Virus record (IMG/VR): IMGVR_UViG_3300009545_000018
Coordinates: 372,001 to 436,000 of that record
Length of the DNA: 64,000 bases
Direction: 5' to 3' (one strand)
The notes beneath the pieces are model-generated. The model made no database searches. It worked only from the letters and a program-made list of their open reading frames with translations, and was not told the origin of the DNA. This document shows, one piece after another, positions 46,659 through 64,000 of this stretch (positions within the stretch are counted from its first letter, which is position 1; each line of letters opens with the position of its first letter). The position numbers were made by a program, and so were the translations under genes.

Positions 46659-46898
46659 TTAAAATAGTTTCCTAATGAATTTAATTAAATTACTACCTGC
46701 TGAGTAAACAGCTAATTTTAATTCTTTTTTTCCAGCTAATTTGTGTTTAACTCCTACTGGGGAGTGATGTTTATATAATTCAGCTGCTTGCTCTGGTGTT
46801 TCTGCTAAAACTCTATAAGTAACAGTGGCTGGTAGCATACATTCAACTTTTACATCAAAATAGAACTTTTGGGGAGGTTGTAATTTATCTTGTTTCAT
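46659..46898 (-). CDS. Hypothetical protein
   Basis: 79-aa ORF. Confidence 0.6.
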   Translation of the reverse strand: MKQDKLQPPQKFYFDVKVECMLPATVTYRVLAETPEQAAELYKHHSPVGVKHKLAGKKELKLAVYSAGSNLIKFIRKLF

Positions 46899-48460: not shown

Positions 48461-48461
48461 T

Positions 48462-48974
48462 TTACTTTCCTGTACTACCAAATCCACTAGCTCCACGACT
48501 AGCATTCCTATTTTTACACAAGACATCATATTCTTCATTTGATATTTCTTCAACAATCATTTCTTTTCTTTTGACAGGAATAATTTGCCCCAAGGCATCC
48601 CCAAAATTAATTTCTAACTTTTTACTATTACTAAATGAAGTTTCATTATTAGTACAAATAATAGCTTCAGGTATATATTGGCAAGCTAATAATAATTCTC
48701 CTTCATAGGTTTCATCGATTGTACCATATAAACAGTGCAATCGTTTTTTACCAAATGTTGAAGATCTTGGCTTTAATTCAAACCACCAACCCTCTGGGCA
48801 AAAAGTTCTAAAACCTAATGGAATAATAGCTTTCTCAAAAGGAGAAAGCGATAAACTTGTGGCTGCTCTTACATCCCATCCTGTGGCATGTGGCTCTGCT
48901 TTTGTTGGTAAAAACTCTTTATTATTTTTTAGATCTTCTCTTAATGCAAACTTAAAATTTGGAATTTCTGACAT
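48462..48974 (-). CDS. dut: Trimeric dUTPase
   Basis: ATGWDV, PRSS, GTIDETYEGE, LGQII, RGASGFGSTG. Confidence 0.92.
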   Translation of the reverse strand: MSEIPNFKFALREDLKNNKEFLPTKAEPHATGWDVRAATSLSLSPFEKAIIPLGFRTFCPEGWWFELKPRSSTFGKKRLHCLYGTIDETYEGELLLACQYIPEAIICTNNETSFSNSKKLEINFGDALGQIIPVKRKEMIVEEISNEEYDVLCKNRNASRGASGFGSTGK

Positions 48975-49034: not shown

Positions 49035-49310
49035 TTACCAAAATGCTTTTAATTCCAAAGGTTTAAACATATTTTGTACAATTATTTGAAAATCATTCAA
49101 AGAATTAACATCTATTAAATATCCTTTATAATAGAATTTAATTTCATCATCTAATTCAATTGCAGGACCATTTATTCTATGTTTTTTGCCTTTTACCCAA
49201 TATTCTTTTCCACCATCTTTATATTCTACTGCTGGACCATCTAAACGATGTAATAAGTCATTCTCATAATAATAATCTCCATATTCATCTGTAACTATTC
49301 CATTTTTCAT
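49035..49310 (-). CDS. HRxDGPA-repeat protein with the shared tail
   Basis: HRLDGPAVE, HRINGPAIE; ends KPLELKAFW. Confidence 0.72.
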   Translation of the reverse strand: MKNGIVTDEYGDYYYENDLLHRLDGPAVEYKDGGKEYWVKGKKHRINGPAIELDDEIKFYYKGYLIDVNSLNDFQIIVQNMFKPLELKAFW

Positions 49311-50843: not shown

Positions 50844-50878
50844 AAAGGCGTTATTTAATCATAGCGCCTTTTTCTTTT
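50844..50878 (+). terminator. Intrinsic terminator
   Basis: AAAGGCGTTAT-ttaatc-ATAGCGCCTTT followed by a T-run. Confidence 0.75.
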
Positions 50879-50984: not shown

Positions 50985-51632
50985 ATGAATTCAAAGAAAC
51001 TTCTAAGATTTGCTATAGCATTCTATTCAATAGCAATGAAAGAAAAACTACCAGAAAATTCTAAAGATACTTCTAAAATACTTAAAAACTTAGAGGCATT
51101 AGAATCATTTAATGCTCGCAAAAGATATGCCAACGCCAATTTAAAAAATTTATCTTCCGGCTCATCCAGGATTGTGTACTTGACACCTGATAAAACTATC
51201 CTTAAGTTAGCAAAAAATGAAAAAGGATTGGCTCAAAATGAAGCAGAGTCTAATCCTAAAATGAAATCTAAGTATATTAATAAAGTACTTAAACGAGCTA
51301 AAAATGATGCTTGGATAGAGGTTCCATATTTAGATAAGATTACTGAAAGAGATTTTAAAAAGATGACAACATTATCTTTTAATGATTTTAGTAATTGTAT
51401 TAGGTATGGTTTAAAATCAGTATCAGGAAATACTGATAAAGATAAACCTGACTGTTTTGATAAGGTGTCCAAACATCCTTTGTATGTAGAAATGTTAGAA
51501 ATAGGTAAAAAATTTAAATTAATGCCCGGTGATTTATCCAAAATATCATCTTGGGGATCTAAAGATAATAAACCTATTCTTATAGATGCTGGATTGACAC
51601 AAAAAGTATATGAAGAATTTTATGAATCATGA
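50985..51632 (+). CDS. Protein-kinase-like fold protein
   Basis: SSGSSRIVY loop, ILKLAK, AQNEAE, GDL...SWG, LIDAG in kinase order. Confidence 0.55.
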   Translation: MNSKKLLRFAIAFYSIAMKEKLPENSKDTSKILKNLEALESFNARKRYANANLKNLSSGSSRIVYLTPDKTILKLAKNEKGLAQNEAESNPKMKSKYINKVLKRAKNDAWIEVPYLDKITERDFKKMTTLSFNDFSNCIRYGLKSVSGNTDKDKPDCFDKVSKHPLYVEMLEIGKKFKLMPGDLSKISSWGSKDNKPILIDAGLTQKVYEEFYES

Positions 51633-52177
51633 TATTTAATAAAATCTTGGATGGATTATATTATTACGGAACATGTATTTTATGTGATGGTAATATGTCT
51701 ATAAATAATGATGGATTTAATTACCAACCAGCTTATAATAATTGTGGTTTCAATTTAGTATTTAATCTTGACAAGATGGATAGACTTGTTGTAGATCCAA
51801 TTTCAGAGTCTGTATATATAAATTATGAACCGGAAGAGTTACTTTTTTATAATAATGATGTTGATGATTTTAAAAATATATATGGATATAATGATTGTTT
51901 TACAACTATAATAAAATGTAAGAATTGTGATAAGTTTGCGTACTCTATAGATATTCATATTGATTTATATGATCAAAAAATATTACATAGTAATTTAAAT
52001 GATATTACTTGTAATTATAAAGAAAAATATTGGATAATGAATAATTATTATCAAAATACAACAACATTATTAAATGATGTTAATGATGAATTGATTAAAG
52101 TGCCATTAATTACACTAGAAAAACAAAATATTAATTATATTTTTAATCGTTTACAAAAATTAATTATTTTCTCCTAA
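51629..52177 (+). CDS. Array member: CxxC protein with the shared tail
   Basis: CILC, CKNC; ends FNRLQKLIIFS. Confidence 0.7.
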   Translation: MIFNKILDGLYYYGTCILCDGNMSINNDGFNYQPAYNNCGFNLVFNLDKMDRLVVDPISESVYINYEPEELLFYNNDVDDFKNIYGYNDCFTTIIKCKNCDKFAYSIDIHIDLYDQKILHSNLNDITCNYKEKYWIMNNYYQNTTTLLNDVNDELIKVPLITLEKQNINYIFNRLQKLIIFS

Positions 52178-52193
52178 TGCTATATGTAGTGGC

Positions 52194-52868
52194 ATGTTAT
52201 CTTCAAATTTTTTAGAGCATGGTAAAACGTGCCCAATTTGTAATAAAAAATTGTCTTTATATGCAATAGTAGGTGAAATAGGAACTTTTAAATGCAATAA
52301 CAATTATGTTGCAAATAAAAAAAGAAAACTTAATTTTTATCCATTAAGAGATAAAATGTTTTTATTACACTCAAGTGTGAATAAAACTGACAATTTTGTA
52401 ATTAAATTAATGGATGATAATAAATTTGATTTTACTTTCTCTTCTGAGAATTTATTTAAAACTATAATTAAATCTAATATAAGTTTTTTTTATATTTGTA
52501 ATCTATCTTCATTTTATAATGAAACAAGCTATTCTATTAATAGCTATAATGTTGACGGGTTTAATGCATGTTATTATAAATTATCCAGTATTCTTTCTTT
52601 TAATTATAAAGACGATAATTTAACCCTAACAAATTATAATTCAAGTTCATGTCATTTAGAAATGTTCTCTCTATTAGAAGATAATAATAAATATTCTTTG
52701 ATTTATAATTATGGAACTCAAAAAACTCTATTTTATTTTAATGACTCTAAAGAAAACAATATAGAACCATCCTTCTTTAAAGAATTTGATATTTTAGAAT
52801 ATTATCCTGATTTTACTAATCATTCTAAAGTTTTGAATAAATTTAAATCTTGGGTTCTATTATCATAA
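52194..52868 (+). CDS. Array member: CxxC protein, variant tail
   Basis: CPIC; ends VLNKFKSWVLLS. Confidence 0.7.
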   Translation: MLSSNFLEHGKTCPICNKKLSLYAIVGEIGTFKCNNNYVANKKRKLNFYPLRDKMFLLHSSVNKTDNFVIKLMDDNKFDFTFSSENLFKTIIKSNISFFYICNLSSFYNETSYSINSYNVDGFNACYYKLSSILSFNYKDDNLTLTNYNSSSCHLEMFSLLEDNNKYSLIYNYGTQKTLFYFNDSKENNIEPSFFKEFDILEYYPDFTNHSKVLNKFKSWVLLS

Positions 52869-53363
52869 ATGATTACTATTAATGATTTTATAAATAGCCG
52901 AAATCATTGTTTCTGTTGTGGTTCAAATTTAGAAATCTGTATAGAAAGTTTTTCTTTACAAAAAACACCTTCTTTATTATTAAAAAACAATATATTATTA
53001 ATTAATTCATCTTACTTTGATATACATATAGATTTATTAAATAATTATGTAATAAAAGGTTGCGATAAATCACATTGGGAATTTAAACTGGTATTATTTT
53101 GTCCTTTACATAAAGAGTTGCCAAAAGATATATATAAGTATGAACTTATTTTTGATATTTATTGTGGAAAAATAGCCAATGAAACGCCTATAGAATACCT
53201 AATGACTGATAATTTTATTTTACAGTCATTTCCATCTCTAGATGAGATGGAATATGTTAGTTTAAAATCCAACAAAAAAATTACATTTCCTTACTTTGAT
53301 TATAGTCAGATGTCACTACCAAAGTTAAAGAGTAAACTAAAGACATATTTGTTAATGCAATGA
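52869..53363 (+). CDS. Array member: CxxC protein, variant tail
   Basis: CFCCGS; ends LKSKLKTYLLMQ. Confidence 0.7.
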   Translation: MITINDFINSRNHCFCCGSNLEICIESFSLQKTPSLLLKNNILLINSSYFDIHIDLLNNYVIKGCDKSHWEFKLVLFCPLHKELPKDIYKYELIFDIYCGKIANETPIEYLMTDNFILQSFPSLDEMEYVSLKSNKKITFPYFDYSQMSLPKLKSKLKTYLLMQ

Positions 53364-54439
53364 ATACATATCAAAAAATAATGGCTTGTGAAGATAAATT
53401 TCAAGCTATCCAAAAAATTATCTCAATAGATGAATTTACAAGAAGACTTTCAGAAATTGATCATATTTGTAACGATCCTACTACATGGAATGATCATAAA
53501 GCTGCCGCACGTATCATGAAAGAACGGCAAAAAATATCTGATGTAATAAGTAAATATACTTACTTTAAAAATTGGGTTCTCTTTTTTAAAGAGATAGTAA
53601 ATGAACTTCCAGAAGAAATACAATCGTTTAGCCAAGAATCTTCTACTCTGCTATCAGAATTGTCTGCATTTGAGATTAGTCAGATTTTTAAAGAAGAGTC
53701 TGATGATTTGCCTGCTATCCTCTCTATCAATGCCGGGGCTGGTGGTTTAGAGGCAGCAAATTGGGTTACTATGCTCTTACGTATGTATGCTAGATATGCC
53801 AGTAATAATAATTTCAAAGTAGAAATTTTAGACACCAAACCATCTGAAGAGCATAGTTCTATTTGTACTGATTCAGTATCTATTAGAATAGAAGGTACTT
53901 ATGCTTATGGTTTTTTTAAAAGTGAGTCTGGTGTACATAGGTTAATACGTAACTCTCCATTTAGTTCAAATGATACTAGACATACATCCTTTGCTGCCGT
54001 GTCTGTTATGCCAGATATAGAAGACACTATTGATATTAATATTTTAGATAAGGATTTAGAAATAACTGCAATGCGGGCGGGCGGTAGTGGAGGACAACAT
54101 CAAAATAAAACTAATAGTGCCGTTAGATTAAAACACTTGCCAACAGGGATTAATATTGCTGTTAGAGGTGAGAGAGATTATCATCAAAATAAAAGAACAG
54201 CTATGAAGATGTTGAAAGCTAAATTATATGAAATTGAGTTAAAGAAGCAACAAGAAGAAAAGAATAAACATTTAGATGCTATGCAAGATGTAGCTTTTGG
54301 TTCTCAAATAAGAACTTATACTATGAGTCCCACTCAAATAGTAAAAGATCATAGAACAGATTTTGAATGTAATAATACTAATAATGTTTTAGATGGAGAA
54401 ATTGATGATTTTATTAGTGCCTATTTGCATATGATGTAA
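53360..54439 (+). CDS. prfB: Peptide chain release factor 2, single uninterrupted ORF
   Basis: GAGGLEAANW, ESGVHRLIRNSPF (SPF = RF2 specificity), RHTSFA, GGSGGQHQNKT (GGQ), GSQIRTY. Confidence 0.95.
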   Translation: MNTYQKIMACEDKFQAIQKIISIDEFTRRLSEIDHICNDPTTWNDHKAAARIMKERQKISDVISKYTYFKNWVLFFKEIVNELPEEIQSFSQESSTLLSELSAFEISQIFKEESDDLPAILSINAGAGGLEAANWVTMLLRMYARYASNNNFKVEILDTKPSEEHSSICTDSVSIRIEGTYAYGFFKSESGVHRLIRNSPFSSNDTRHTSFAAVSVMPDIEDTIDINILDKDLEITAMRAGGSGGQHQNKTNSAVRLKHLPTGINIAVRGERDYHQNKRTAMKMLKAKLYEIELKKQQEEKNKHLDAMQDVAFGSQIRTYTMSPTQIVKDHRTDFECNNTNNVLDGEIDDFISAYLHMM

Positions 54440-54440
54440 T

Positions 54441-55013
54441 ATGAATAAGCTTTTATTAAAAGATTTTATAAAATATAATAGTCCTTGTTTTGTCTGCAAT
54501 AGTAATATTGAATTAATTGTTAATAATTATGATAATTTAACTCAACATAACTCTAGACTACATTGTCATGTTTCATCTAAACAAACTGTTATACCAATTA
54601 AAATTAAGTATAGTAATTCTCTAGAGTTAATCATTCATCATAAAGATAATAGATTTAGCACTAACAATATAGATGAGTTACTAAAGTATTTTCAAACAAA
54701 CATTTTGTGGTTAACTAGCCAATGTTCAAATTTAAAATGTAATTCTGTTATTGTATCCTCTCAAATTGTATTAAATACTAAATTTTTTAGACTTGATCCT
54801 CTAACCATACAATATGAACATTTTTACTTAAAAAATTCTAATAAAATATCAGCTATAGTAATGACTGATTATAGAAATAATAGTACAGTCATATCTTTAG
54901 CTGATGAATTTAATATTATTCTTAATCTATCACTAACCGCAATGAGTTTGAAAAAATATAAAACTAAAGAACAATTCTTTAAAAAAATGAAAACGTATAT
55001 TACATTTTCATAA
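54441..55013 (+). CDS. Array member: CxxC protein with the shared tail
   Basis: FIKYNSPCFVC (parallels FINSRNHCFCC in 52869); ends FKKMKTYITFS. Confidence 0.7.
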   Translation: MNKLLLKDFIKYNSPCFVCNSNIELIVNNYDNLTQHNSRLHCHVSSKQTVIPIKIKYSNSLELIIHHKDNRFSTNNIDELLKYFQTNILWLTSQCSNLKCNSVIVSSQIVLNTKFFRLDPLTIQYEHFYLKNSNKISAIVMTDYRNNSTVISLADEFNIILNLSLTAMSLKKYKTKEQFFKKMKTYITFS

Positions 55014-55466
55014 AAAAATCTTAAGATTATTAAGCCTTTTACAGTATAGAATGGTTTCTACTAAATCACGTATCTTTAATTGATGTTCATTGTTGTCTTT
55101 AATCCATTTTTGTTTTTTAAATCTGTAATCTGTTTTAATATTTATCTCTTTACCTAATTCAAATAATCTAATTTGAAAATGACTAAACTCTCTAAGTTTT
55201 TTAGGTTTACAATCGTAAGCGTCGTCAAGAACTAATTGTATATTATAATCGCCTACCTTAATAAAGTTATCAAAAATAATCCTTTTATTCTTATTGTAGT
55301 AGGTATATAATATAATGTTGTCTCTTAGAGATTCTTTTATTTTATTTTTAGTAACTTTATTACTAAAATCTAAAATTACGGTTGTTTGTCTAGTTGCTTT
55401 AATTAAACTCATAATGTATGTTTGTAATGCAGGTATATTAATATGTTTGATGTAAATGATCCACAT
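55008..55466 (-). CDS. Inverted unrelated gene inside the array, also with the shared tail
   Basis: No CxxC start; ends CKRLNNLKIFL. Confidence 0.65.
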   Translation of the reverse strand: MWIIYIKHINIPALQTYIMSLIKATRQTTVILDFSNKVTKNKIKESLRDNIILYTYYNKNKRIIFDNFIKVGDYNIQLVLDDAYDCKPKKLREFSHFQIRLFELGKEINIKTDYRFKKQKWIKDNNEHQLKIRDLVETILYCKRLNNLKIFL

Positions 55467-55763
55467 TGCTTAATTTGTAATAGACAATGTCGTGCTTTTA
55501 TAGAAAACTTTTACTCCTGTGATCTTATGCCAGCTCATTATTTTTCAATAATGATCAAAGATAATGTAATTAAACATATTCAAATTAGATTGGAAAATTT
55601 TTGCGCAACTTCCAATTATTCTTTGAATAAAACTTTTATTTGGAAGCATTGTGATAATAATTTAAATTGTTCCAAAATTATTATGTCTCCGGCAATGGAA
55701 TTTGATTTTAATAATTATATTAAGATGTTAAATAAATTGAAAACCATAATTAATTTTAGTTGA
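55443..55763 (+). CDS. Array member
   Basis: CLIC..C....H; ends LNKLKTIINFS. Confidence 0.7.
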   Translation: MFDVNDPHCLICNRQCRAFIENFYSCDLMPAHYFSIMIKDNVIKHIQIRLENFCATSNYSLNKTFIWKHCDNNLNCSKIIMSPAMEFDFNNYIKMLNKLKTIINFS

Positions 55764-56158
55764 TAATGTTACATATAAAAGTGATATTAAAACAAATGCC
55801 AATTAATTGTCCAATATGTAATGGACCCTTAGTCAATAACTTTAAAGAATATCCCAAAGGTAATACATATGCAATGGATAAAAATTGTTTTCAAGCCAGC
55901 CATTACTTTTATTGTGCTTCTACAAAAGGTAAGGAAGATGAAGTTGCTTTTATTTGTATCGGACTTGATCCATATAAAAAAGTAACGGCAAATTGGTTAG
56001 TCTTAGAAAAGAAATTATATATTTATGGTAATGAGTCTACCAATAATCGAAAAAATATCTCAGAAGTAAAAACGACATATATTCCATATGTTGAACCAGA
56101 TTTTTCGGATCCTTTTAAATTAATTGACAAAATAAGATTATATTGTAAATTAATATAA
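55760..56158 (+). CDS. Array member, variant tail
   Basis: NCPIC...C...SH; ends IDKIRLYCKLI. Confidence 0.7.
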   Translation: MIMLHIKVILKQMPINCPICNGPLVNNFKEYPKGNTYAMDKNCFQASHYFYCASTKGKEDEVAFICIGLDPYKKVTANWLVLEKKLYIYGNESTNNRKNISEVKTTYIPYVEPDFSDPFKLIDKIRLYCKLI

Positions 56159-56160
56159 TC

Positions 56161-56544
56161 GTGTTATATGTCCATCATATGGATGATACTTTGCTGTGTC
56201 CTATCTGTGGCAGCAAGATGAGAAACCTTATTATGAATGATAAGTTTTGTTATCAAATTGGTAAAGTTCTCTCTTACATAGAGAGATCTTGTCATAATAA
56301 AGTAAATCATTATGTTCAAATGATTGTAGACAAGAGTTCTAAAAAAGTTTTTTGTGTAAAACTTCCTTTGAATCCACAATATTCTAAAACAATAGAAATA
56401 AATTTCTATAAAAGTGAATGTATTTTAAATCTTCTTAAAGATAAAATAAGTTATACTTTAAATATTCCTAAAATAATTGTGCCTGACTTTCCAAATCTAA
56501 TTAAATTGAAACAACAAGTTAACTTATATTCTCTATTTTCATGA
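56161..56544 (+). CDS. Array member
   Basis: CPICGS...CH...NH; ends LKQQVNLYSLFS. Confidence 0.7.
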   Translation: MLYVHHMDDTLLCPICGSKMRNLIMNDKFCYQIGKVLSYIERSCHNKVNHYVQMIVDKSSKKVFCVKLPLNPQYSKTIEINFYKSECILNLLKDKISYTLNIPKIIVPDFPNLIKLKQQVNLYSLFS

Positions 56545-56561
56545 GGTGATATATATAAAGT

Positions 56562-56942
56562 ATGATAAATTGTCAAGTCTGCGGACAAAATCTAGTGAGA
56601 TCAGGCAATGCAGAAATATATACTTGTATGTCTTCTTTCCATTGGATTGAAACTTATAATAAATATATAGAATATAAACACTTTGCTTGTCATTTTAAAG
56701 ATAGTAAAATATTATATAAGGTTGTAACAATCTATCCATATTGTTTCAAAATGTTTTATGAAGATAATAAAACTAGAATATCTAAATCCATTGTCAGGTC
56801 TGAAATTAAGAAAAATGGTAAAGAGACCGCTTACTCTTCTGAAGAAGTTAATATTTTAGAAATTGATTCTATCATAGAATTTCCTTGGTCTAATAAAGAT
56901 CAAGTGCTTGATAAATTAAAATTATATTCTATCTTTTCATGA
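56562..56942 (+). CDS. Array member
   Basis: CQVCG...C; ends LDKLKLYSIFS. Confidence 0.7.
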   Translation: MINCQVCGQNLVRSGNAEIYTCMSSFHWIETYNKYIEYKHFACHFKDSKILYKVVTIYPYCFKMFYEDNKTRISKSIVRSEIKKNGKETAYSSEEVNILEIDSIIEFPWSNKDQVLDKLKLYSIFS

Positions 56943-57259
56943 ACTATCAATGTCATTATTGTAATAAAAATTTAGAAAGAACCTCAACTGTTACATTGTC
57001 TTGTATTGGAACAGGAAATTACATTATTAAATGTTTAAATTGTTTTAAAACTAAAATAAAATTTAAGGATTATAATATTTTTGATGTAATTCTAGTTGGT
57101 AATAATTATAGTTGTCTAAAATTTTCTAATAGTTTTGATAGTAATAAAAGTTGTATAGAGGTAAATTCTTCCGAACATTTATATTTAAATAAGTGTTTAT
57201 CTTATGAAGATTGTATATTAATCTTTAAAAAATTTAACAAAATATCTGCTTTCTTATGA
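56939..57259 (+). CDS. Array member
   Basis: CHYC...C...CLNC; ends KKFNKISAFL. Confidence 0.7.
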   Translation: MNYQCHYCNKNLERTSTVTLSCIGTGNYIIKCLNCFKTKIKFKDYNIFDVILVGNNYSCLKFSNSFDSNKSCIEVNSSEHLYLNKCLSYEDCILIFKKFNKISAFL

Positions 57260-57558
57260 TTTGTCCTATTTGTAACTATAATTTATCTAAAAGTGACCTT
57301 CATGAAGGCGTCTTTATTTGTCAACAAGAAAAGAAAGTAAAACATATTTTTATGTGTTATTTTTCTTTATCTGAACCAGATATTCTAGAAGATTATTATA
57401 TAGAAGTTTCTTCTCTTAATTTAAATATTGATGGTTACCCCACTGACAATGAAACTCATATAACTTTTAATAAGAATACAATAATTTTCTCATATATAGA
57501 TTATTGTGACGCCTTAGAACTCTTTAATAAAATAAAGAAAATGTATATATTTACTTAA
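57256..57558 (+). CDS. Array member
   Basis: MICPIC...C...KH; ends NKIKKMYIFT. Confidence 0.72.
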   Translation: MICPICNYNLSKSDLHEGVFICQQEKKVKHIFMCYFSLSEPDILEDYYIEVSSLNLNIDGYPTDNETHITFNKNTIIFSYIDYCDALELFNKIKKMYIFT

Positions 57559-57560
57559 TT

Positions 57561-57881
57561 ATGTTATGTCCCATCTGTAATAATCCATGTTCTCCTAAAT
57601 TAACTACTAAAAATAATATTATTGGTGTATCTTGTGAAATAATTACAATTAGTAATTATTATCATATATTTATTTATGCTTCTGAAGACAATTTTATGCT
57701 GGCAATATATTACACTACCCTTGAAGAAGAACAATTTATAATTGTTGGCTGTTACAATGATAGTAATTCTGTAAATTTTATTTTTTCTATAAAAAATAAA
57801 ACCTTTTTAATACCACAATTTAATCCCTGTTCTTCTTTAGAAGTAATAGATAAATATTTAAATATGAAGGCATTTATATAA
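57561..57881 (+). CDS. Array member
   Basis: MLCPIC; ends IDKYLNMKAFI. Confidence 0.72.
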   Translation: MLCPICNNPCSPKLTTKNNIIGVSCEIITISNYYHIFIYASEDNFMLAIYYTTLEEEQFIIVGCYNDSNSVNFIFSIKNKTFLIPQFNPCSSLEVIDKYLNMKAFI

Positions 57882-58150
57882 TGTGTCCTATTTGTTTTGA
57901 ACCTCATCCTTCTCATAAAGTTAGATTTAATCATAGGTTTGTTTATATAAATGACTTTCATTGGTCTCTTTCTATACATTATAAAAATACTACTATAGAA
58001 ATTAGCAGAGAATGTCCTAGTAATGGTTTTAATTATAATTATTATGTTTATTTACAGATCGGCTCAAACGAATACCAATTACCAGAATTTGAATTGTGTA
58101 ATACTTTAGAAGTATTAAATAAATTTATGAAAATTAAATCATTTGCATAA
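57881..58150 (+). CDS. Array member
   Basis: MCPIC; ends LNKFMKIKSFA. Confidence 0.7.
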   Translation: MCPICFEPHPSHKVRFNHRFVYINDFHWSLSIHYKNTTIEISRECPSNGFNYNYYVYLQIGSNEYQLPEFELCNTLEVLNKFMKIKSFA

Positions 58151-58209
58151 TTATTTTTAATTGCTTTATCGATTATCATGATTATAGTAGTGCTGATATA
58201 AAATTTTCA

Positions 58210-58488
58210 ATGCATTGTCCAATTTGTAATAAATTTATAACGCCTGACGCCGATGCCATCAGAGTATGTCGAGGTAATAATCCAGAGGGATTTCATCATT
58301 TTTATTTTGAAAACCCAACTAATTTTAGTTTATTTTTTGAAAATGTAGAACTCCATGCCCTTAATAATAAATATACTTTTATAGTCGAAGAGCCCCGCCA
58401 AATAATAAAAATTAATTTAGATAAAATTGAATATTGTGAAATTATGGAAATTATAGATAGATATATGAAAATGTTGGTTTTTTCATGA
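58210..58488 (+). CDS. Array member
   Basis: MHCPIC...C...HH; ends IDRYMKMLVFS. Confidence 0.72.
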   Translation: MHCPICNKFITPDADAIRVCRGNNPEGFHHFYFENPTNFSLFFENVELHALNNKYTFIVEEPRQIIKINLDKIEYCEIMEIIDRYMKMLVFS

Positions 58489-58766
58489 ATTGTCCCATTT
58501 GTCAGCTATCTATGACACTTATTAAAATAAATAATAAAGATGAAAGATTTCGCTGTGAATCAAATAAGCAACATTATTGTGTTTATTATTTAAATGGACT
58601 TACTTGGTGGGTGCAACATAATAACATGGAAATTGAATATGATCATCTATTTGGTTGTAGTTTAATTGTAAATGATGAATCAGGTATAGAACACTATTAC
58701 AGAATAGATTATAATGTGTCTTTTCAAGATGCACCAAAACTTTTAAAATTGAAAGCTTTTTTATGA
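58485..58766 (+). CDS. Array member
   Basis: MNCPIC...C...QH; ends APKLLKLKAFL. Confidence 0.72.
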   Translation: MNCPICQLSMTLIKINNKDERFRCESNKQHYCVYYLNGLTWWVQHNNMEIEYDHLFGCSLIVNDESGIEHYYRIDYNVSFQDAPKLLKLKAFL

Positions 58767-59071
58767 ATTGTCCAGTTTGTAATCAACCTATGATTTATGT
58801 AAAAGAAGATGAAGGTGGTCCGCAAACCTTTAATAGAAATAAATGTAACTATCGTCCTGACCATGATACTAGGCATTATGATGATGGTGCCTGGTTTACA
58901 AAATTAAATAATATTCAAATAGGACATAATCTAGATGATCCTAATCTTTCCAACTTCTATGTAAGAATAATTGGCGAACATGAAACCTCCTTTTTAAATA
59001 TTGATGCAATATCTTTTGAAGATAGTTATAATTATCTTATTAAATTTTCGAAATTGAAAGCCTTTCTATGA
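58763..59071 (+). CDS. Array member
   Basis: MNCPVC...C...DH; ends LIKFSKLKAFL. Confidence 0.72.
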   Translation: MNCPVCNQPMIYVKEDEGGPQTFNRNKCNYRPDHDTRHYDDGAWFTKLNNIQIGHNLDDPNLSNFYVRIIGEHETSFLNIDAISFEDSYNYLIKFSKLKAFL

Positions 59072-59352
59072 ATTGCCCCATCTGTAACCATCAAATGGAA
59101 GAAAGATATAAATATTTAGCTCCCACAGGAATTTTCTTTAGATGTATCCAATTCTCACAACAGCATGATACCGTTTTTATTAACGAAAAAGAATGGACCG
59201 TTAGATATAACAGTATCATTTTGTTTACAATAAATAGTTTGTTTTATTTAAAATTTTCCACCAATAGTCAAAGCATTAATATTCCCAATATTCCTTTTAA
59301 TGAATCTTTTAAATGTATACAAAAATATCTTAAATTACAAAGCTTTACATGA
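59068..59352 (+). CDS. Array member
   Basis: MNCPIC...C...QH; ends IQKYLKLQSFT. Confidence 0.72.
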   Translation: MNCPICNHQMEERYKYLAPTGIFFRCIQFSQQHDTVFINEKEWTVRYNSIILFTINSLFYLKFSTNSQSINIPNIPFNESFKCIQKYLKLQSFT

Positions 59353-59405
59353 TCTGCCCCTTTAATATTCTGCAACGTTATATTAATTTATCAGCTTTCT
59401 TATGA
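59349..59405 (+). CDS. 18-aa tail-only mini-ORF MICPFNILQRYINLSAFL
   Basis: Family start (MICP) fused in frame to the tail; ATGA overlaps on both sides. Confidence 0.6.
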   Translation: MICPFNILQRYINLSAFL

Positions 59406-59772
59406 TTATTCTTTATACTTTTCTCTTGTCTTTAATATTAGCAGCTTGGCTTACAGCTACCCCCAAATTACAGCTAATCCCAACTAAACATCTTCTTATA
59501 TGTCCATTTTGTCTAAAACAATTGGATAAGTATGCTGTTATGTTTAGAGACTGTAATAATTTCCCTCCCCTGGAAAAATTAATCATGCTTTCTCTATGTT
59601 TGCAGAAAATTTCTATCTGATTGTTTATGCTGATGTTACTATTAAATTAGAAAAATATTATAATTCATATTTTATCACAATCAATGATAAAATATTTACA
59701 ATCCCTCCCTTCCAAGTGTGTAATAGTTTAGAGGTAATGCATAAATATTTAAAATTATTGCCCTTTTCTTAA
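59402..59772 (+). pseudogene. Frameshifted array member
   Basis: ICPFC...C in one frame; from the C-rich run near 59561-59570 the -1 frame continues NHAF...MHKYLKLLPFS stop. Confidence 0.6.
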
Positions 59773-59816
59773 CAACATACAATATCTCGATCGCAACTTC
59801 CCTCGCGCATAAAATT

Positions 59817-60071
59817 ATGAAATGTCCCCTCTGTTATGATAGCTGTCAAACTCTCTATTCTAATGAATTTAGATGTACTAAGTTTGATCATAGTTTCGTT
59901 TTTTCTCATCATGATTGGGCTCTCTATCATATACCATCGGATATAATTACTACAACTTATGGGCTATCGTATTATACCAGTAATAATATTATCTCCTTTG
60001 AAACGCTAAAATCCCCTGATGCTGCTATTAAAATTTTGTTAAAATTCTTAAAAATATCCGCCTTTGCCTAA
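59817..60071 (+). CDS. Array member
   Basis: MKCPLC...C..FDH; ends LLKFLKISAFA. Confidence 0.72.
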   Translation: MKCPLCYDSCQTLYSNEFRCTKFDHSFVFSHHDWALYHIPSDIITTTYGLSYYTSNNIISFETLKSPDAAIKILLKFLKISAFA

Positions 60072-60072
60072 A

Positions 60073-60218
60073 ATGAATTGTCCCATTTGTCAAGCTAAAC
60101 TTATAAAATATCTAAGAATCCATTAGAAGAATTGTCTTGCTATAAAATGAAAATTATCCCGTTTTCAGAGTGTTATCAAACGTTACAACGCTATATCAAG
60201 ATGTCTGCCTTCCTATGA
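60073..60218 (+). pseudogene. Frameshifted and shortened array member
   Basis: MNCPICQAKLIK, then the -1 frame at an A-run gives ISKNPLEE...LQRYIKMSAFL stop; internal 23-aa ORF 60147-60218. Confidence 0.6.
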
Positions 60219-60514
60219 AAATTTGTCCCGTTTGTCATCAGCCACTAATAAAAGAAAAATTAGGTAGTCCCATATTTACTTCTTATTATTGTACCGAATT
60301 TGGTCATGTTGCTTCTTGGTCTTCTTCTAACAGTTGGTCATTATACTGCTATGTTAATGATTATTTATATGCTATTATCGGCTCGGAAGATAAATGTAGT
60401 TTTATCACCTTTACTGATAATACAACAAAAGTAACAACAACGAATATTTATACTTCTTTTGAAGAGTCTTATCTGTCTATCCAACGAATGGTTAAATTAT
60501 TAACTTTTATTTAA
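60215..60514 (+). CDS. Array member
   Basis: MKICPVC start via ATGA overlap; ends IQRMVKLLTFI. Confidence 0.72.
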   Translation: MKICPVCHQPLIKEKLGSPIFTSYYCTEFGHVASWSSSNSWSLYCYVNDYLYAIIGSEDKCSFITFTDNTTKVTTTNIYTSFEESYLSIQRMVKLLTFI

Positions 60515-60515
60515 A

Positions 60516-60821
60516 ATGAATTGCCCCCACTGTAATATAATGTGTTCTAAATCTGATCATACTTATGATTGTTTTAAAGATTTTAAACATACTTTTATCT
60601 TTTCTAACAAAAACTCTTGGTGGCTTATTATTAAATATGATAGTCTAATAGAATATCGTTTGGAAATTCATAATTCTCTTCCTACTTTTTATGTCTTTGC
60701 TAATCCTCCCTTTTCTATAGTCTTTGAATATGTAATACATGAACCCGTAATAGCAGCAAATGCTAAATCTATAATAGAAAAATATATTAATCATTATAAT
60801 AAAATGAAAGCCTTTATATGA
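60516..60821 (+). CDS. Array member
   Basis: MNCPHC...C...KH; ends HYNKMKAFI. Confidence 0.72.
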   Translation: MNCPHCNIMCSKSDHTYDCFKDFKHTFIFSNKNSWWLIIKYDSLIEYRLEIHNSLPTFYVFANPPFSIVFEYVIHEPVIAANAKSIIEKYINHYNKMKAFI

Positions 60822-61054
60822 AAGAATTACCTGTTAAAAATGATAGTTATTTCTATAATGATAATAATTGGTCTGTTTATTATGTTTTCTGTAATAAATA
60901 TAAGGTAAGAATTTGCTGCATCTTAGAAAAATGTTATGTCCATATGTTGAATGAACAATACGTAACGGTAAAATGTATGCCAATTAATTCTTTAAAGTTT
61001 GATGATGCAGATTCTTTTGTTAATAGATATTTTAATTTAATGGCTTTTTATTAA
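60818..61054 (+). CDS. Last array member (N-terminal CxxC missing)
   Basis: ends VNRYFNLMAFY. Confidence 0.65.
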   Translation: MKELPVKNDSYFYNDNNWSVYYVFCNKYKVRICCILEKCYVHMLNEQYVTVKCMPINSLKFDDADSFVNRYFNLMAFY

Positions 61055-61361
61055 AATATAATGTCATAGGATGCTGTCAAAGGGAGCAAAGTGTTAGAAA
61101 GTGGGAGGGTGTGGGAAGATAGCTGAATTAATGTCTTTTAATGTTTTGGCTGTCATTTGGGGTGGAATAGGATAGAAAGAGAAGATAAGTTATACTTTGA
61201 TTTAGAAGGTTTAAGGAGGAAAGTAAGATTTTGGATTGGTTTGAACTGTATTATAGAGCTTATAGATGGTTTGATGTGTTTAAAATAGCTGTAGACCGGG
61301 TCCCCAGCCGCCTCGGACCGTCAAACTCCCCACCTTTTCACTGCTGCTACAATACAGGGTT

Positions 61362-61396
61362 TGGCATACTCTCTGCATTATTCAATTAACATACCA
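61362..61396. promoter_or_regulatory. Head-to-head sigma54-type element pair 1 (right half degenerate)
   Basis: TGGCATACTCTCTGCA ... reverse TGGTATGTTAATTGA. Confidence 0.55.
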
Positions 61397-61470
61397 ATTA
61401 TTCTTTTATAAGTCTTATTAATTAATTATACTTACATTACAATCATTTAATAAACATTATTAATCATTTA

Positions 61471-61504
61471 TGGCATCTTTCTTGCTTTCGCTGTTATTTT
61501 GCCT
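61471..61504. promoter_or_regulatory. Head-to-head sigma54-type pair 2
   Basis: TGGCATCTTTCTTGCT; reverse AGGCAAAATAACAGC; 4-nt centre. Confidence 0.55.
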
Positions 61505-61537
61505 CACTGAACAGCTTTTCAGCCCTTTTAGTAGTCT

Positions 61538-61572
61538 TGGTACAGTAACTGCAAGATGCAAAGCCTATACCA
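61538..61572. promoter_or_regulatory. Head-to-head sigma54-type pair 3
   Basis: GG-N10-GC-N5-GC-N10-CC; reverse TGGTATAGGCTTTGCA. Confidence 0.65.
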
Positions 61573-61667
61573 TGCCATAGCAGTCATTCCAGTTACACTG
61601 CACTTACCCATCTTTTAACGGTTAGTACCTGATTAATGTAGCGGGTAGCTGAGATAAGGAGATTACT

Positions 61668-61859
61668 ATGGCACAATTCAAGATTTTGTCTCAAGTCAAT
61701 GGTTCTTGGTTGGAGCAGGGGAAAGATCTCGGCGGTACTACTGTTATGAATCAAGCTGCTCAATTGGAAAAGCAGGGATTGAATGTTCGAGTTTTCCGAA
61801 CTGATATTCCCAAGTTCATTTATGAAACGGGAGCAGGATACCACGGAATCTGGTACTGA
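61668..61859 (+). CDS. Small hypothetical (putative early) protein
   Basis: AAGGAG RBS; followed by a terminator. Confidence 0.7.
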   Translation: MAQFKILSQVNGSWLEQGKDLGGTTVMNQAAQLEKQGLNVRVFRTDIPKFIYETGAGYHGIWY

Positions 61860-61865
61860 AAGAAT

Positions 61866-61893
61866 AAAGGAGCCTAAGGCTCCTTTTCTTTTT
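61866..61893 (+). terminator. Intrinsic terminator
   Basis: AAAGGAGCC-taa-GGCTCCTTT plus T-run. Confidence 0.8.
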
Positions 61894-61900
61894 ATCTTTG

Positions 61901-61935
61901 TGGTATAGGATTTGCTTATTGCAATTAATATACCA
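61901..61935. promoter_or_regulatory. Head-to-head sigma54-type pair 4
   Basis: TGGTATAGGATTTGCT-TAT-TGCAATTAATATACCA. Confidence 0.72.
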
Positions 61936-62007
61936 AGACTTTTTAGATAAAAGAGCTCTACCCATCCTATAACGGAATCAAAGCAGCTATTGTAAGGTAG
62001 GTATCAT

Positions 62008-62379
62008 ATGGAATTCACCTATGAGAATGATGAAGGGGAAGACATTACAGTCACCTTCCCTAGTGTTAAGGTAGTTTGCCCAAGGTGTAAAGGGCACGGA
62101 ACCCACCTTCACAATGATATTGGTAGCTATGCTTACAGCGTAGAAGAATTCCAAGATTCCTTTGATGAAGAAGAACAGGCAGAGTATTTTCGCCATGGTG
62201 GAAGATATGACGTTCTCTGCGAACGCTGTCACGGTAAAAACGTGGTGGATGAGATTGACGAAGAGAAGTGTCAGCAGGATCCGGCTTTGACAGAAGCCTG
62301 GCAAGCTTTTTGTCAGAAAGAAAAGGATGATGCTGATTATGAAAGACTCTGTGAATCAGAGCGGCGCTTTGGTTGCTGA
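62008..62379 (+). CDS. Hypothetical protein with DnaJ-type CxxCxGxG Zn motifs
   Basis: CPRCKGHG, CERCHGKN. Confidence 0.72.
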   Translation: MEFTYENDEGEDITVTFPSVKVVCPRCKGHGTHLHNDIGSYAYSVEEFQDSFDEEEQAEYFRHGGRYDVLCERCHGKNVVDEIDEEKCQQDPALTEAWQAFCQKEKDDADYERLCESERRFGC

Positions 62380-62416
62380 TTGAGATCCCATCCTATAACG
62401 GATTACTGCTAATAGT

Positions 62417-62629
62417 ATGACAACCCTGCAGAATCTCAAGAAGCGTGACTTGTCTTTTGCTTACCAGATTGCAGTGGCAGACTGGAAAAAACTTTCTGCT
62501 ATGTGTTCTGGGCAGTCAGCTGACGATCTGGCTAATGGCTTTCATGGTAAGTCATTGGCTGGAGTGCTGTTTGATTCGGAATTGGCAGTGGATCAGATTG
62601 CAGCTAAGCTGGATCGGTTGAATCCTTAA
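62417..62629 (+). CDS. Small hypothetical protein
   Basis: ATG 14 nt after a box. Confidence 0.65.
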   Translation: MTTLQNLKKRDLSFAYQIAVADWKKLSAMCSGQSADDLANGFHGKSLAGVLFDSELAVDQIAAKLDRLNP

Positions 62630-62635
62630 GGGATT

Positions 62636-62665
62636 GAAAGGGAGGTTTACCTCCCTTTCTTTTTA
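62636..62665 (+). terminator. Intrinsic terminator
   Basis: GAAAGGGAGG-ttta-CCTCCCTTTC plus T-run. Confidence 0.85.
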
Positions 62666-62673
62666 ATTGATGC

Positions 62674-62708
62674 TGGTATGCCGTTTGCATATTGCAATGT
62701 TCGAGCCA
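62674..62708. promoter_or_regulatory. Head-to-head sigma54-type pair 5
   Basis: TGGTATGCCGTTTGCA-TAT-TGCAATGTTCGAGCCA. Confidence 0.72.
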
Positions 62709-62871
62709 ACCGTCATAAAGTTTGCTTTAAACTTGTTCCCATCTGATAACGGATAGATCCTAATAGTATAGTTTTTCTGAGGGTTCTGACTAAAAGTAAA
62801 ACCCTCCCCCTTTACGTTGCAAACAGTAACTGTAGTAGGCAATAAGCTTCCAGTTATATTGTAACAAAGTT

Positions 62872-62902
62872 TGGCGGTATCTTAAAACCGCCACATTTTT
62901 TA
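62872..62902 (+). terminator. Intrinsic terminator
   Basis: TGGCGGT-atcttaaa-ACCGCCA plus T-run. Confidence 0.7.
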
Positions 62903-62934
62903 ATCCCATCATTTAACGGAAAGGTCTAAGTAAT

Positions 62935-63129
62935 ATGAATACTCTTTTTAAGTTGGTTGTTGTGATGTTGGCATTGTTTGCCGTGACTTTCTTGATTCAA
63001 ACCTATGCCAATTCTTGGTTTCATCAAGTGGCATTCACGGCTCCTATCATTGGAACCATGAGCTATGCAGCTTGTACCATTGTGGCAGTAGGTTGTGTGT
63101 TGCTGTCAAAGCTGCATTGGGGCAAGTAA
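62935..63129 (+). CDS. Small membrane protein (2 TM)
   Basis: Hydrophobic; ATG 14 nt after a box. Confidence 0.65.
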   Translation: MNTLFKLVVVMLALFAVTFLIQTYANSWFHQVAFTAPIIGTMSYAACTIVAVGCVLLSKLHWGK

Positions 63130-63227
63130 TGTTAGGTTTCGTGGTGTTTTGCCTGGTAGGTTTTTTTACTGGGCATTGGGTAGTGGGTGGTATTATTGGA
63201 ATTGTAGTATACGCCCTAAATAAGTAA
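63129..63227 (+). CDS. 32-aa hydrophobic peptide
   Basis: TAATG overlap; MLGFVVFCLVGFFTGHWVVGGIIGIVVYALNK. Confidence 0.55.
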   Translation: MLGFVVFCLVGFFTGHWVVGGIIGIVVYALNK

Positions 63228-63259
63228 CTCCCATCAATAAACGGTTGAATGTTATTGAT

Positions 63260-63436
63260 ATGACATATCATCCCAGTTACCGAGCAGTAGATTCTGTTGG
63301 TACTGAATGTGAAACTTTTGAACATGAGTATCAAGCGGTAGACTATTGGACTGGTGCTCCTACTGGAATTGATATTCAATATTGGAATGGTTCTGAATGG
63401 GAAGAATATAATCCTAGGACTTTCACTAAAGATTAA
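63260..63436 (+). CDS. Small acidic hypothetical protein
   Basis: ATG 14 nt after a box; stop 2 nt before the next box. Confidence 0.65.
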   Translation: MTYHPSYRAVDSVGTECETFEHEYQAVDYWTGAPTGIDIQYWNGSEWEEYNPRTFTKD

Positions 63437-63472
63437 TTCCCATCAATTAACGGATTGTACCTAGTTATTGAG

Positions 63473-63652
63473 ATGCAAAACCTAAAAGACCGATTGGAAA
63501 AGTTAGCAGATTCTTTTAAGGGTACTACCAATTCTTTTGGTAGGTTTACCGTCACCAATGTAGGTTGCGGGATTCTGAGAGTTGATGGTGAAGGTGTGCA
63601 GTATACTCCCGATGTAATATTGGGTTTTCTCAATCGACACGGCATTAAGTAA
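63473..63652 (+). CDS. Small hypothetical protein
   Basis: MQNLKDRLEKLAD...; stop 2 nt before the next box. Confidence 0.62.
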   Translation: MQNLKDRLEKLADSFKGTTNSFGRFTVTNVGCGILRVDGEGVQYTPDVILGFLNRHGIK

Positions 63653-63697
63653 TTCCCATCAATAAACGGATTAGATCTATTAGAAAGGATAAAAAAG

Positions 63698-63802
63698 ATG
63701 AAAGCATTCAATTGTTATATTGTCAAGCGCAAGGGCAAAGTCATCAAGGGTGAGAGTCGCAAGCTGCGCAATGCAGCCAAGCGACAACGTCAAGGTCGCT
63801 AA
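63698..63802 (+). CDS. 34-aa basic peptide resembling ribosomal protein bL36
   Basis: MKAFNCYIVKRKGKVIKGESRKLRNAAKRQRQGR; AAAGGA RBS; terminator follows. Confidence 0.55.
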   Translation: MKAFNCYIVKRKGKVIKGESRKLRNAAKRQRQGR

Positions 63803-63805
63803 ACC

Positions 63806-63841
63806 AAAAGAATGAGAGCTTAATTGTTCTCATTCTTTTTT
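63806..63841 (+). terminator. Intrinsic, possibly bidirectional terminator
   Basis: AAAAGAATGAGAGC-ttaatt-GTTCTCATTCTTTT. Confidence 0.85.
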
Positions 63842-63850
63842 AATTGGTCT

Positions 63851-63885
63851 TGGCATATGCTTTGCAACTTGCAATAAGCTTGCCA
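63851..63885. promoter_or_regulatory. Head-to-head sigma54-type pair 6
   Basis: TGGCATATGCTTTGCA-ACT-TGCAATAAGCTTGCCA. Confidence 0.78.
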
Positions 63886-63944
63886 GGCGTTATATTTTTA
63901 TATCCCATCTATTAACGGAAAGACATACTAAGTGGAGGCTGGTA

Positions 63945-64000
63945 ATGTTCATTAAGATTAAAGCTTTGTTCAAGCTGTATGATCTGGGAATCATTAGCAG
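63945..64000 (+). CDS. Start of a gene truncated by the window edge
   Basis: GGAGG RBS; MFIKIKALFKLYDLGIIS... Confidence 0.5.
   Translation, partial: MFIKIKALFKLYDLGIIS

Follow-up and report, generated by a model that had tools for sequence, protein, structure and literature searches.

A hypervariable tandem array of putative zinc-ribbon proteins in an uncultured jumbo phage and the C-terminal helix it shares with many other small phage proteins

Introduction

This locus raises the question of why a run of small tandem phage genes should keep both ends of their products nearly fixed around a middle that varies almost at random, and whether the shared C-terminal end does more than complete a fold. 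The genes occupy positions 51629–61054 of a 64,000-nucleotide window (G000:C1:372001-436000), the whole stretch of DNA analysed here, which lies on a single contig of 447,763 bp (IMG/VR virus record IMGVR_UViG_3300009545_000018); coordinates below are window positions unless a contig or locus is named. An earlier note on this DNA had described a tandem array of consecutive hyper-diverged paralogues that start MxCPxC, end in a shared tail, evolve by birth and death and might form a library of target-binding adaptors, for example against host defences. The array encodes a previously undescribed phage protein family on one small scaffold, and its tail closes many other small proteins of the same phage.

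The virus record is rated 100 % complete and the genome has a GC content of 0.31. Genes for a large terminase and a tail sheath, together with very large structural genes, lie on the contig and thus identify the phage as an uncultured jumbo myovirus. Megablast against 50,697 phage records found no close cultured relative (terminase identity there was at most 25 %), and neither megablast nor tblastn against these records matched the array; Atu_ph07 has MORN-like repeats in common with the phage and nothing more, the tail being absent from it. The array was present in one public DNA run only, a rhizosphere metagenome from which this DNA probably came. Among IMG/VR relatives, 225 terminase loci were confirmed and 80 were kept at 70–89 % identity, several of them on contigs of 340–447 kb. 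The comparison set consisted of L098, the orthologous locus of a relative (identical to L099), from another rhizosphere-type sample that is also the source of a contig with an 89 % identical terminase, and genomes G001, G002, G003 and G004, these four being labelled 'provirus' by IMG/VR.

A protein family with fixed ends and a variable body

The array holds 21 member genes in one direction (+), comprising four long (164–224 amino acids, aa), four mid-sized (106–126 aa), 12 short (78–106 aa) and one frameshifted gene, together with two body-less relics, an RF2 gene and one gene on the opposite strand (Table 1). The open reading frames (ORFs) were as the earlier note had described them. Most members are joined by the ATGA or TAATG overlaps that it had reported, the claimed AT-richness was confirmed by a GC content of 0.24–0.25 against 0.31 for the genome, and the two further members that it had placed outside the array are real according to the family alignment and lie on the minus strand. 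The genes of the array are not all members: the members are co-directional, but the RF2 gene and a minus-strand tail-bearing gene are embedded among them. The MxCPxC start likewise held for the members generally but not for the last gene, which has no CxxC. A scan for promoters and terminators found nothing above shuffled sequences apart from two terminator-like hairpins (50844–50871 and 61866–61886) that bracket the co-directional block.

Members have a common layout, in which a C-x2-C...C-x5-H zinc ribbon is followed by a beta-meander and a C-terminal helix ending [KR]-Phi-x-K-L-K-A-F-Phi (Phi, hydrophobic residue). When the 21 short members of the genome were aligned, M1, C3, C6, C28, H34 and K97 were at least 90 % conserved and F101 was invariant. 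Across 148 family members, M1, C3, P4, C6, C28, H34, F36 and F(-2) were 94–100 % conserved (negative numbers count back from the C-terminus), and most other columns had a near-maximal entropy of 3.4–4.0 bits. The presumptive zinc ligands were retained in external and own members alike (C3 in 143 of 143, C6 in 144 of 144, C28 in 143 of 145 and H34 in 143 of 148), a set of four conserved ligands that by sequence would make a C2CH two-knuckle zinc ribbon. Conserved hydrophobic residues in this alignment occupy alternate strand positions (F36, Y38, W44, L46, I53, Y66, I80 and F83), and close to the C-terminus a K or R is found at -9 in 134 of 146 sequences and a K or N at -6 in 125 of 146. The pI (isoelectric point) of members ranges from 4.5 to 9.4, with many members acidic; their surfaces therefore differ.

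A hidden Markov model (HMM) of the body, with the tail cut off, recovered 28 members genome-wide (E<1e-3), in clusters near 18–21, 41–42, 51–52, 62–68, 121, 414 and 427–433 kb. A profile search of 1.84 billion representatives returned 201 matches at E≤1e-3; 130 of the best 150 were external, and nearly all of these 130 start M-x-C-P-x-C and end [KR]-[YF]-x-K-L-K-A-F-[LIS]. About 180 external metagenomic cluster representatives belong to the family, none of them with a name. One 6.4-kb contig from another sample carries 21 tandem genes of 86–148 aa around one family member. Short members were equally distant within and between genomes (median identity about 31–33 %, maximum 48 %) and pairwise identity revealed no recent duplicates among them, a pattern that fits either an old repertoire, since shuffled and unequally lost, or very rapid divergence. 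With a median pairwise identity of about 31 % and a maximum of 48 %, the genes are the hyper-diverged tandem paralogues that had been proposed.

Sequence profiles from Pfam, PHROGs and the PDB gave nothing significant for the family. The Lar restriction alleviation protein (PF14354) scored 13.3 bits against a cut-off of 28.6, with the zinc knuckle alone aligning, and neither zf_C2H2_ZHX (19.7 bits) nor RlmA (E=0.1) was significant. A MORN/DUF6745 identity was rejected for the array members, in which those tested had no Pfam hit and from which the HR.DGPA motif, confined to other tail-bearing genes, was absent. An F-box/PRANC adaptor identity was also rejected, with no F-box-like Pfam hit and a likeness of functional analogy only. 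The tail motif strings occurred in no relevant paper of a literature search.

Predicted structure

AlphaFold2 modelled the short member at 58763–59068 from a 21-sequence alignment (predicted local distance difference test, pLDDT, 92; predicted template modelling score, pTM, 0.80) as a seven-strand antiparallel meander with a C-terminal helix at residues 88–101. The tail forms the last two turns of this predicted 14-residue helix, which follows directly after the last strand (pLDDT 83–96). The model of the long member at 54441–55010 (12-sequence alignment; pLDDT 87, pTM 0.81) contains two beta modules, each followed by a helix, the last of which is the tail. These two modelled members, one short and one long, have the same beta-meander-plus-helix scaffold, whereas members with no common fold would have told against the earlier note, and with the 148-member alignment they uphold the earlier description of fixed termini around a hypervariable middle. 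No KLKAF motif is present in the internal helix of the long form, which indicates that the fold alone does not require it. Per-position hydrophobic fractions place the hydrophobic face of the helix at positions 91, 92, 95, 98 and 102; on ideal helix geometry, K-9, K-6 and F-2 lie off this packing face.

Neither model had a significant match in the PDB (Foldseek E≥0.45; VIA Z≤5.7) or among the AFDB clusters. Several unnamed proteins of one uncultured phage set in BFVD reached template modelling (TM) scores of 0.5–0.6, and the ESM atlas yielded an unnamed archaeal cluster (TM 0.66) and TumE (TM 0.57), a seven-strand alpha+beta toxin fold that targets translation (PMC10584680). The TumE-like shape is weak (TM 0.57/0.47 and 0.57/0.43, on about 90 residues), with no PDB or AFDB support, and the TumE HMM (PF20126) matched nothing in the whole genome at E up to 1; the likeness is therefore a weak lead.

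The tail as a module across the phage genome

The shared tail claimed for the array was conserved, but it is neither private to the array nor a free peptide. Of 648 non-overlapping ORFs with 70 aa or more, 81 finish with the tail, where random internal positions would give 0.7; 85 ATG-initiated ORFs of at least 50 aa do so too, against 1.2 expected. A looser definition alone gave 95 ORFs (3.4 expected), the combined total was 112, and 13–17 % of phage ORFs have a tail. It occurs on 30 % of ORFs of 90–110 aa and on none of at least 400 aa. An N-terminal CxxC was present in only 24 of the 81, the array being only one user of the module. At the DNA level, the strict pattern K-[LIM]-K-A-F-x-stop occurred 38 times in the genome and not once in a reversed control.

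After the tails were trimmed, the 85 proteins fell into 66 BLAST clusters, one of which is a MORN-like repeat family ending SQEEFEKLLKLKAFW, and the tail sits on at least three unrelated body types of this phage. Ten larger tail-bearing proteins were scanned and none had a Pfam domain. Conservation extends beyond the search pattern: position -9 is K or R in 69 of 85 proteins, -8 and -11 are hydrophobic, and a helix-capping box of Ser and Glu occupies -15 and -12. Of 67 occurrences of the core [KN][LIM][KLIQ][AS]F, 58 are separated from the stop by exactly one residue and none by 0 or 2–11 residues; in the external zinc-ribbon family the corresponding figure is 64 of 65. The same motif is thus held at a fixed distance from the carboxylate on unrelated proteins, as expected of a C-terminal docking or sorting peptide in general. 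Tails use six Leu codons, four Ala codons and both the TCN and AGY families of Ser codons, with first and second codon positions fixed and third positions variable. This indicates that selection acts at the protein level.

Related phages differing in GC content (31–39 %) also have tails, on other bodies: 16 ORFs in G001, 24 in G002 and 12 in G004, with essentially none in G003. The metagenomic homologues of one MORN-like member, 120 in all, comprise 17 that fit the tail pattern, a few that come close to it and a remainder that ends in other conserved modules. The same body thus occurs with the tail or with other ends, which makes the tail a portable unit. At least four alternative C-terminal modules were seen among the MORN-like (PF20530-related) homologues P0153–P0272 of L005:9453-9788, namely ...KLKAFW, ...CLFSEDFLNG, ...VEVDGVKYKLVKA and ...KFGVDVSKVKIKK, which hints that the swapping of C-terminal modules may be a more general system among small phage proteins. 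Given the predicted structures, 'conserved C-terminal helix module' describes the tail better than 'free peptide'.

Turnover of the array among relatives

The number of members at the locus differs between relatives: the phage studied here has about 21, G001 about 9 and the L098 phage about 37. From the head gene to the fourth mid-sized member, the array is collinear with L098 (65–77 % nucleotide identity, one-to-one reciprocal best hits). Proximal members are 32–56 % identical to those of L098, against 82 % for the head gene and 66 % for RF2. Estimates by NG86 gave a non-synonymous divergence (dN) of 0.38–0.65 and a ratio to synonymous divergence (dN/dS) of 0.28–0.86 for syntenic members, against 0.11–0.27 and 0.06–0.17 for flanking genes, ratios that are rough because dS is near saturation. 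Proximal members evolve 2–6 times faster than their flanks.

The distal zone, from position 56939, has 14 genes here and 28 in L098, without collinear orthology; the sole nucleotide match between the two is one 54-nt junction of a tail and the following start, and similarity to L098 resumes at 62737. At the same locus in the more distant G001, RF2 is surrounded by no more than 9 members, and the array contains an inserted gene that its N-terminal sequence marks as GIY-YIG-like. Varying member counts and relics decayed in place therefore indicate birth-and-death or cassette turnover. This supports the birth-and-death evolution put forward in the earlier note, for which an array invariant among relatives would have been a difficulty.

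Interpretation of the array and its tail

It is possible, and is proposed here tentatively, that the array members are a diversified set of binders, built on a fixed scaffold and sharing a single docking or sorting helix. The scaffold would comprise an N-terminal C2CH zinc ribbon (M-x-C-P-x-C ... C-x5-H-x-F), a seven-strand meander and a closing helix, with two beta modules in long members. The most plausible place for the conserved alternate hydrophobic residues is a single face of the sheet, packed beneath the helix; the near-random positions that alternate with them would lie on the exposed face, giving it the look of a diversified binding surface, and through this variable face each member could bind its own target, which might belong to the host or to a competitor. 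Tail-bearing proteins would present a common basic-aromatic epitope, consisting of K-9, K-6, F-2 and the free carboxylate, to be read as a docking or sorting signal by one common partner or place. This signal would close some 80–110 small proteins of the phage and be kept in related phages. The distal array may be a cassette zone of fast gain, loss and replacement, with the proximal members kept as fast-evolving orthologues.

The off-face positions of K/R-9, K-6 and F-2, the residue-fixed C-terminus and the motif-free internal helix together suggest that the tail has a function beyond closing the fold, and one shared partner or destination for tail-bearing proteins is the most economical extra function. 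A common partner is made more credible by the occurrence of the tail genome-wide and clade-wide on unrelated bodies. The genome-wide tail likewise strengthens the earlier note's proposal of an adaptor library that docks by its tail, which is plausible but unproven; the anti-defence role is a guess. We infer target binding by the members, expression of the array, and both the existence and the nature of a common partner.

A set of results weighs against this interpretation. The exposure of K-9, K-6 and F-2 is argued from helix periodicity only, and the helix is confidently predicted as part of the domain, so that much of its conservation may be structural. Cluster members that were looked up had no label beyond 'hypothetical protein', with no homologue of known function and no member with a known target. 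A search for a tail partner found none. Two tandem ClpP-like genes (G000:C1:221835-222978; locus L008 855–2034; E 6e-46 and 1e-50) are conserved in G001 and G003; by eye, the catalytic Ser and His are present in the second but missing from the ClpR-like first, and no ClpX was found. The phage also has two AAA+ genes and a tubulin/FtsZ homologue (1868–3226, plus strand; PF00091, E 3e-16) that is 72–76 % identical in G001 and G003. Both ClpP/ClpR and tubulin are therefore present in the tail-less G003 too. A weak PDZ-like match fell short of the curated threshold, and the search found no beta-clamp. A phyletic profile of five genomes left 27 unspecific candidates, none with a telling domain, which include the whole block around the array (a SET-domain gene, an HD gene with an intein, a dUTPase, the 215-aa gene and RF2). 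The tail has likenesses to the membrane-targeting end of MinD, the FtsZ C-terminal peptide, HbYX, the HslU tails and ClpX C-motif 2, which we take to be leads, not tests. A DksA/TraR-type zinc-finger gene lies just upstream of the ClpP-like pair.

A broader proposal, which we consider doubtful, is that the tail helix is a proteome-wide address tag of this jumbo-phage clade, by which one receptor gathers more than 80 small, fast-evolving effectors in one place. That might bring them into the capsid for injection along with the DNA, to a protease for removal at a set time, to a compartment built by the phage or to the membrane, and the zinc-ribbon array would be the most actively diversifying set of cargo.

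Alternative explanations

The alternative that survives best, unlikely though we judge it, is that the helix is a mere structural closing of a scaffold of beta-meander and cap helix, and that the proteins are lone stoichiometric binders or inhibitors with no common partner. It accords with a helix modelled at high pLDDT as part of the domain, with the clear packing face (positions 91, 92, 95, 98 and 102) and with a receptor search that found none; MORN-like bodies are beta-hairpin sheets too, so that bodies that look unrelated could share an architecture. It accounts less well for K/R-9 and K/N-6, which are far more fixed (134 of 146 and 125 of 146) than exposed helix residues usually are, or for a C-terminus that is residue-fixed in 58 of 67. 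In the long form, an internal helix without the motif fills the same structural role, and the MORN-like body is also found with other C-terminal modules.

That the tail is instead a membrane-targeting amphipathic helix of the MinD/FtsA kind, taking some 100 small proteins of the phage to the inner side of the host membrane, is improbable. Targeting helices are usually borne on a linker and tolerate extra C-terminal residues, whereas the tail helix abuts the last strand and ends at a fixed residue; in the models it appears as part of the fold rather than as a detached helix on a flexible linker, and its hydrophobic face would be needed to cover the conserved sheet face. In its favour are a helix that is Lys-rich (-9, -6 and -4) and amphipathic, with a clear hydrophobic moment and a Phe near its end, and a resemblance of the tail to the K-x-K-x-F-F end of MinD, which we take to be a lead only.

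The position of RF2 inside the array in all three loci compared, and the co-occurrence of the RF2-containing block with tail-bearing genomes, would suit members that are nucleic-acid or translation factors linked to the embedded RF2, with zinc ribbon and basic helix binding RNA, DNA or the ribosome. The weak zinc-ribbon similarity to the rRNA methyltransferase RlmA (E 0.1) and the TM of 0.57 to TumE, a translation-targeting toxin fold of seven strands and helices (PMC10584680), point the same way. The RlmA match is not significant, however, and the TumE likeness is weak, at a TM of 0.57 for about 90 residues and with no HMM hit in the genome. With a pI of 4.5–9.4, many acidic members and hypervariable surfaces ill-suited to a conserved nucleic-acid target, this explanation is quite improbable. 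Finally, it is very improbable that the shared ends are a DNA-level feature (promoter, translational coupling or recombination site), with the protein conservation a by-product or the ORFs non-coding: the tail and the next start codon often form one conserved junction, the 54-nt example of which is the only nucleotide match between two distal arrays, and the body-less relics suggest recombination between gene ends, but a DNA-level signal is rejected on the codon evidence (positions 1 and 2 fixed, 3 varying, with six Leu codons, four Ala codons and both Ser families), the tail precedes unrelated downstream sequence and occurs in genomes of 31–39 % GC, the models are confident and some 180 external homologues keep the same protein motifs.

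Comparison with known systems

Poxvirus ankyrin/PRANC F-box-like proteins and the multigene families (MGF) of African swine fever virus (ASFV) combine a variable binding part with a conserved C-terminal docking module. Like the array, they consist of tandem, fast-evolving paralogues whose copy number varies between close relatives, with a conserved C-terminus on variable bodies. There is no relation in sequence or fold, the host of the phage is a bacterium, and the phage module is one 14-residue helix at a fixed end rather than an F-box and is also found on unrelated bodies. C-terminal address or docking peptides include PTS1, encapsulin cargo-loading peptides, the coat-binding helix of P22 scaffolding protein, HbYX, the HslU tails and the XB tail of SspB. 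The tail resembles these in being a short conserved end on unrelated proteins that is fixed to the carboxylate and has a penultimate aromatic residue, but its motif is unlike all of them, and the prediction is a helix that packs in part against the domain it belongs to.

Haloarchaeal small CPxCG zinc-finger proteins (DUF7568) are also small one-domain zinc ribbons with many copies per genome, and were nearest by language-model features, with a score (0.87) below significance. The N-domain of RlmA has a similar C-P-x-C ... C ... H-x-F spacing, again below significance. Neither has the beta-meander or the tail, and both belong to other taxa. TumE/DUF6516 (PF20126; PMC10584680) may share a seven-strand antiparallel sheet packed by one or more helices (TM 0.57 by query, 88 residues), but has no zinc ribbon, KLKAF tail or HMM match; the array has no antitoxin-like neighbour and the similarity is within the chance range for small alpha+beta proteins. 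MORN-like/DUF6745 (PF20530) phage proteins are likewise beta-hairpin sheets, a subset of them has the identical tail module SQEEFEKLLKLKAFW, and array members give weak structural hits to MORN and RHS meanders. The array members, in contrast, have no MORN repeats or Pfam hit, and most MORN-like homologues end otherwise.

Genes in and around the array

Table 1. Array genes and tail-bearing genes of the window
Feature	Window position	Strand	Remarks
Head gene, 215 aa	50985-51632	+	Non-member; phrog_4301 (annotated as of unknown function); 4-nt overlap with long member 1; 82 % aa identity to L098; co-occurs with tail-bearing genomes
Long member 1, 182 aa	51629-52177	+	Tail ...RLQKLIIFS
Long member 2, 224 aa	52194-52868	+	Tail ...KFKSWVLLS
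Long member 3, 164 aa	52869-53363	+	Tail ...KLKTYLLMQ
RF2-like release factor	53360-54439	+	Non-member; PCRF and RF-1 domains; SPF and GGQ motifs by eye; same position in L098 and G001
Long member 4, 190 aa	54441-55013	+	Modelled: two beta-meander modules, helix after each
152-aa gene without CxxC	55008-55466	-	Tail ...NNLKIFL; conserved in L098 and G001
Mid member, 106 aa	55443-55763	+	Tail ...KLKTIINFS
Mid member	55796-56158	+	Start MPINCPIC; ORF opens at 55760
Mid member, 121 aa from ATG	56179-56544	+	ORF opens at 56161
Mid member, 126 aa	56562-56942	+	Last gene with one-to-one L098 orthologue
Short members 1-4 of eight (89-106 aa)	56939-57259, 57256-57558, 57561-57881, 57881-58150	+	Hypervariable cassette zone
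Short members 5-8 of eight (89-106 aa)	58210-58488, 58485-58766, 58763-59071, 59068-59352	+	Hypervariable cassette zone
Relic minigene	59349-59405	+	MICPFNILQRYINLSAFL then stop; N-terminal motif fused straight to tail, body deleted
Frameshifted member	59402-59772	+	...LICPFCLKQLDKY... in frame 59402-59620; C-terminal half with tail ...KYLKLLPFS in 59596-59772
Short member, 84 aa	59817-60071	+	ORF and family alignment
Relic	60073-60218	+	MNCPICQAKLIKYLRIH then stop; in another frame ...QTLQRYIKMSAFL then stop (end ...QRYIKMSAFL); body lost
Three short members	60215-60514, 60516-60821, 60818-61054	+	60818-61054 without N-terminal CxxC
Two outlying short members, ATGA-joined	42449-42751, 42165-42452	-	Family alignment
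129-aa protein	45793-46182	-	Other body type: Cys-rich N-terminus and MORN-like repeat; tail ...KFKLKAFL
91-aa MORN-like repeat protein	49035-49310	-	Tail ...LELKAFW; ORF list
Two non-CxxC tail-bearing genes	6043-6357, 6354-6674	+	No Pfam family for 6043-6354
Non-CxxC tail-bearing gene	9422-9682	+	Ends SQEEFEKLLKLKAFW; tail pattern
Non-CxxC tail-bearing gene	18406-18780	+	Tail ...NNLKVFL; tail pattern
Two MORN-like tail-bearing genes	35965-36279, 36282-36569	-	Tail pattern

The RF2 gene, which is of the bacterial type, is absent from the tail-less G003, along with the whole surrounding block. The stop codon of many array genes is the TGA of an ATGA overlap, which raises the possibility that the phage RF2 may be linked to UGA termination in coupled genes, or that the host has an altered reading of UGA. 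Directly past the array (61100–64000), GC content climbs from about 0.25 to 0.41 and the ORFs differ in character; the G001 array (120–126 kb) similarly adjoins a stretch with GC-rich-looking ORFs, by eye. Positions 62737–62919 are 82 % identical to L098 16175–16371. The post-array stretch could come from foreign DNA or from the host, or mark a genome end.

The two outlying zinc-ribbon members directly adjoin an IF-1 homologue (PF01176, E 8e-16; 42754–42978, minus strand) that lies next to a GIY-YIG/NUMOD3 homing-endonuclease gene (42975–43598, minus strand). An HD-domain-like gene (HD by eye; 46895–48556, minus strand) is split by a LAGLIDADG-type intein-like insert (PF14528, E 2e-7), and its tblastn match in G001 consists of two separate pieces. 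The same accessory block encodes a papain-family cysteine protease (PF00112; 40193–41014, plus strand), an RNase T-type exonuclease (PF00929; 44591–45229, minus strand) and a SET-domain protein (PF00856; 46179–46658, minus strand). The 8-mers TTCCCATC/GATGGGAA and TAACGGAT/ATCCGTTA are 5–7-fold enriched in intergenic DNA genome-wide, for example at 53230–53252. They seem to form hairpins and are perhaps a terminator or other family of regulatory repeats.

Significance

On the plainest reading the array still defines a new protein family, with about 200 cluster representatives and two modelled folds that have no PDB or AFDB match. Jumbo phages carry hundreds of unreadable small genes, and in this one about one in seven ORFs of at least 70 aa shares a single C-terminal module, of which one user has grown into an array of hypervariable cassettes built on a new zinc-ribbon scaffold. 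Should the variable faces bind proteins of the host, the family would be both a natural library of small binders and a record of an arms race. If the tail is a docking or sorting signal, a single receptor would organise much of the accessory proteome of the phage, and the tail peptide would be a handle with which to pull that receptor out. Were it an address tag, it would be the first C-terminal sorting signal of its kind described for a bacteriophage.

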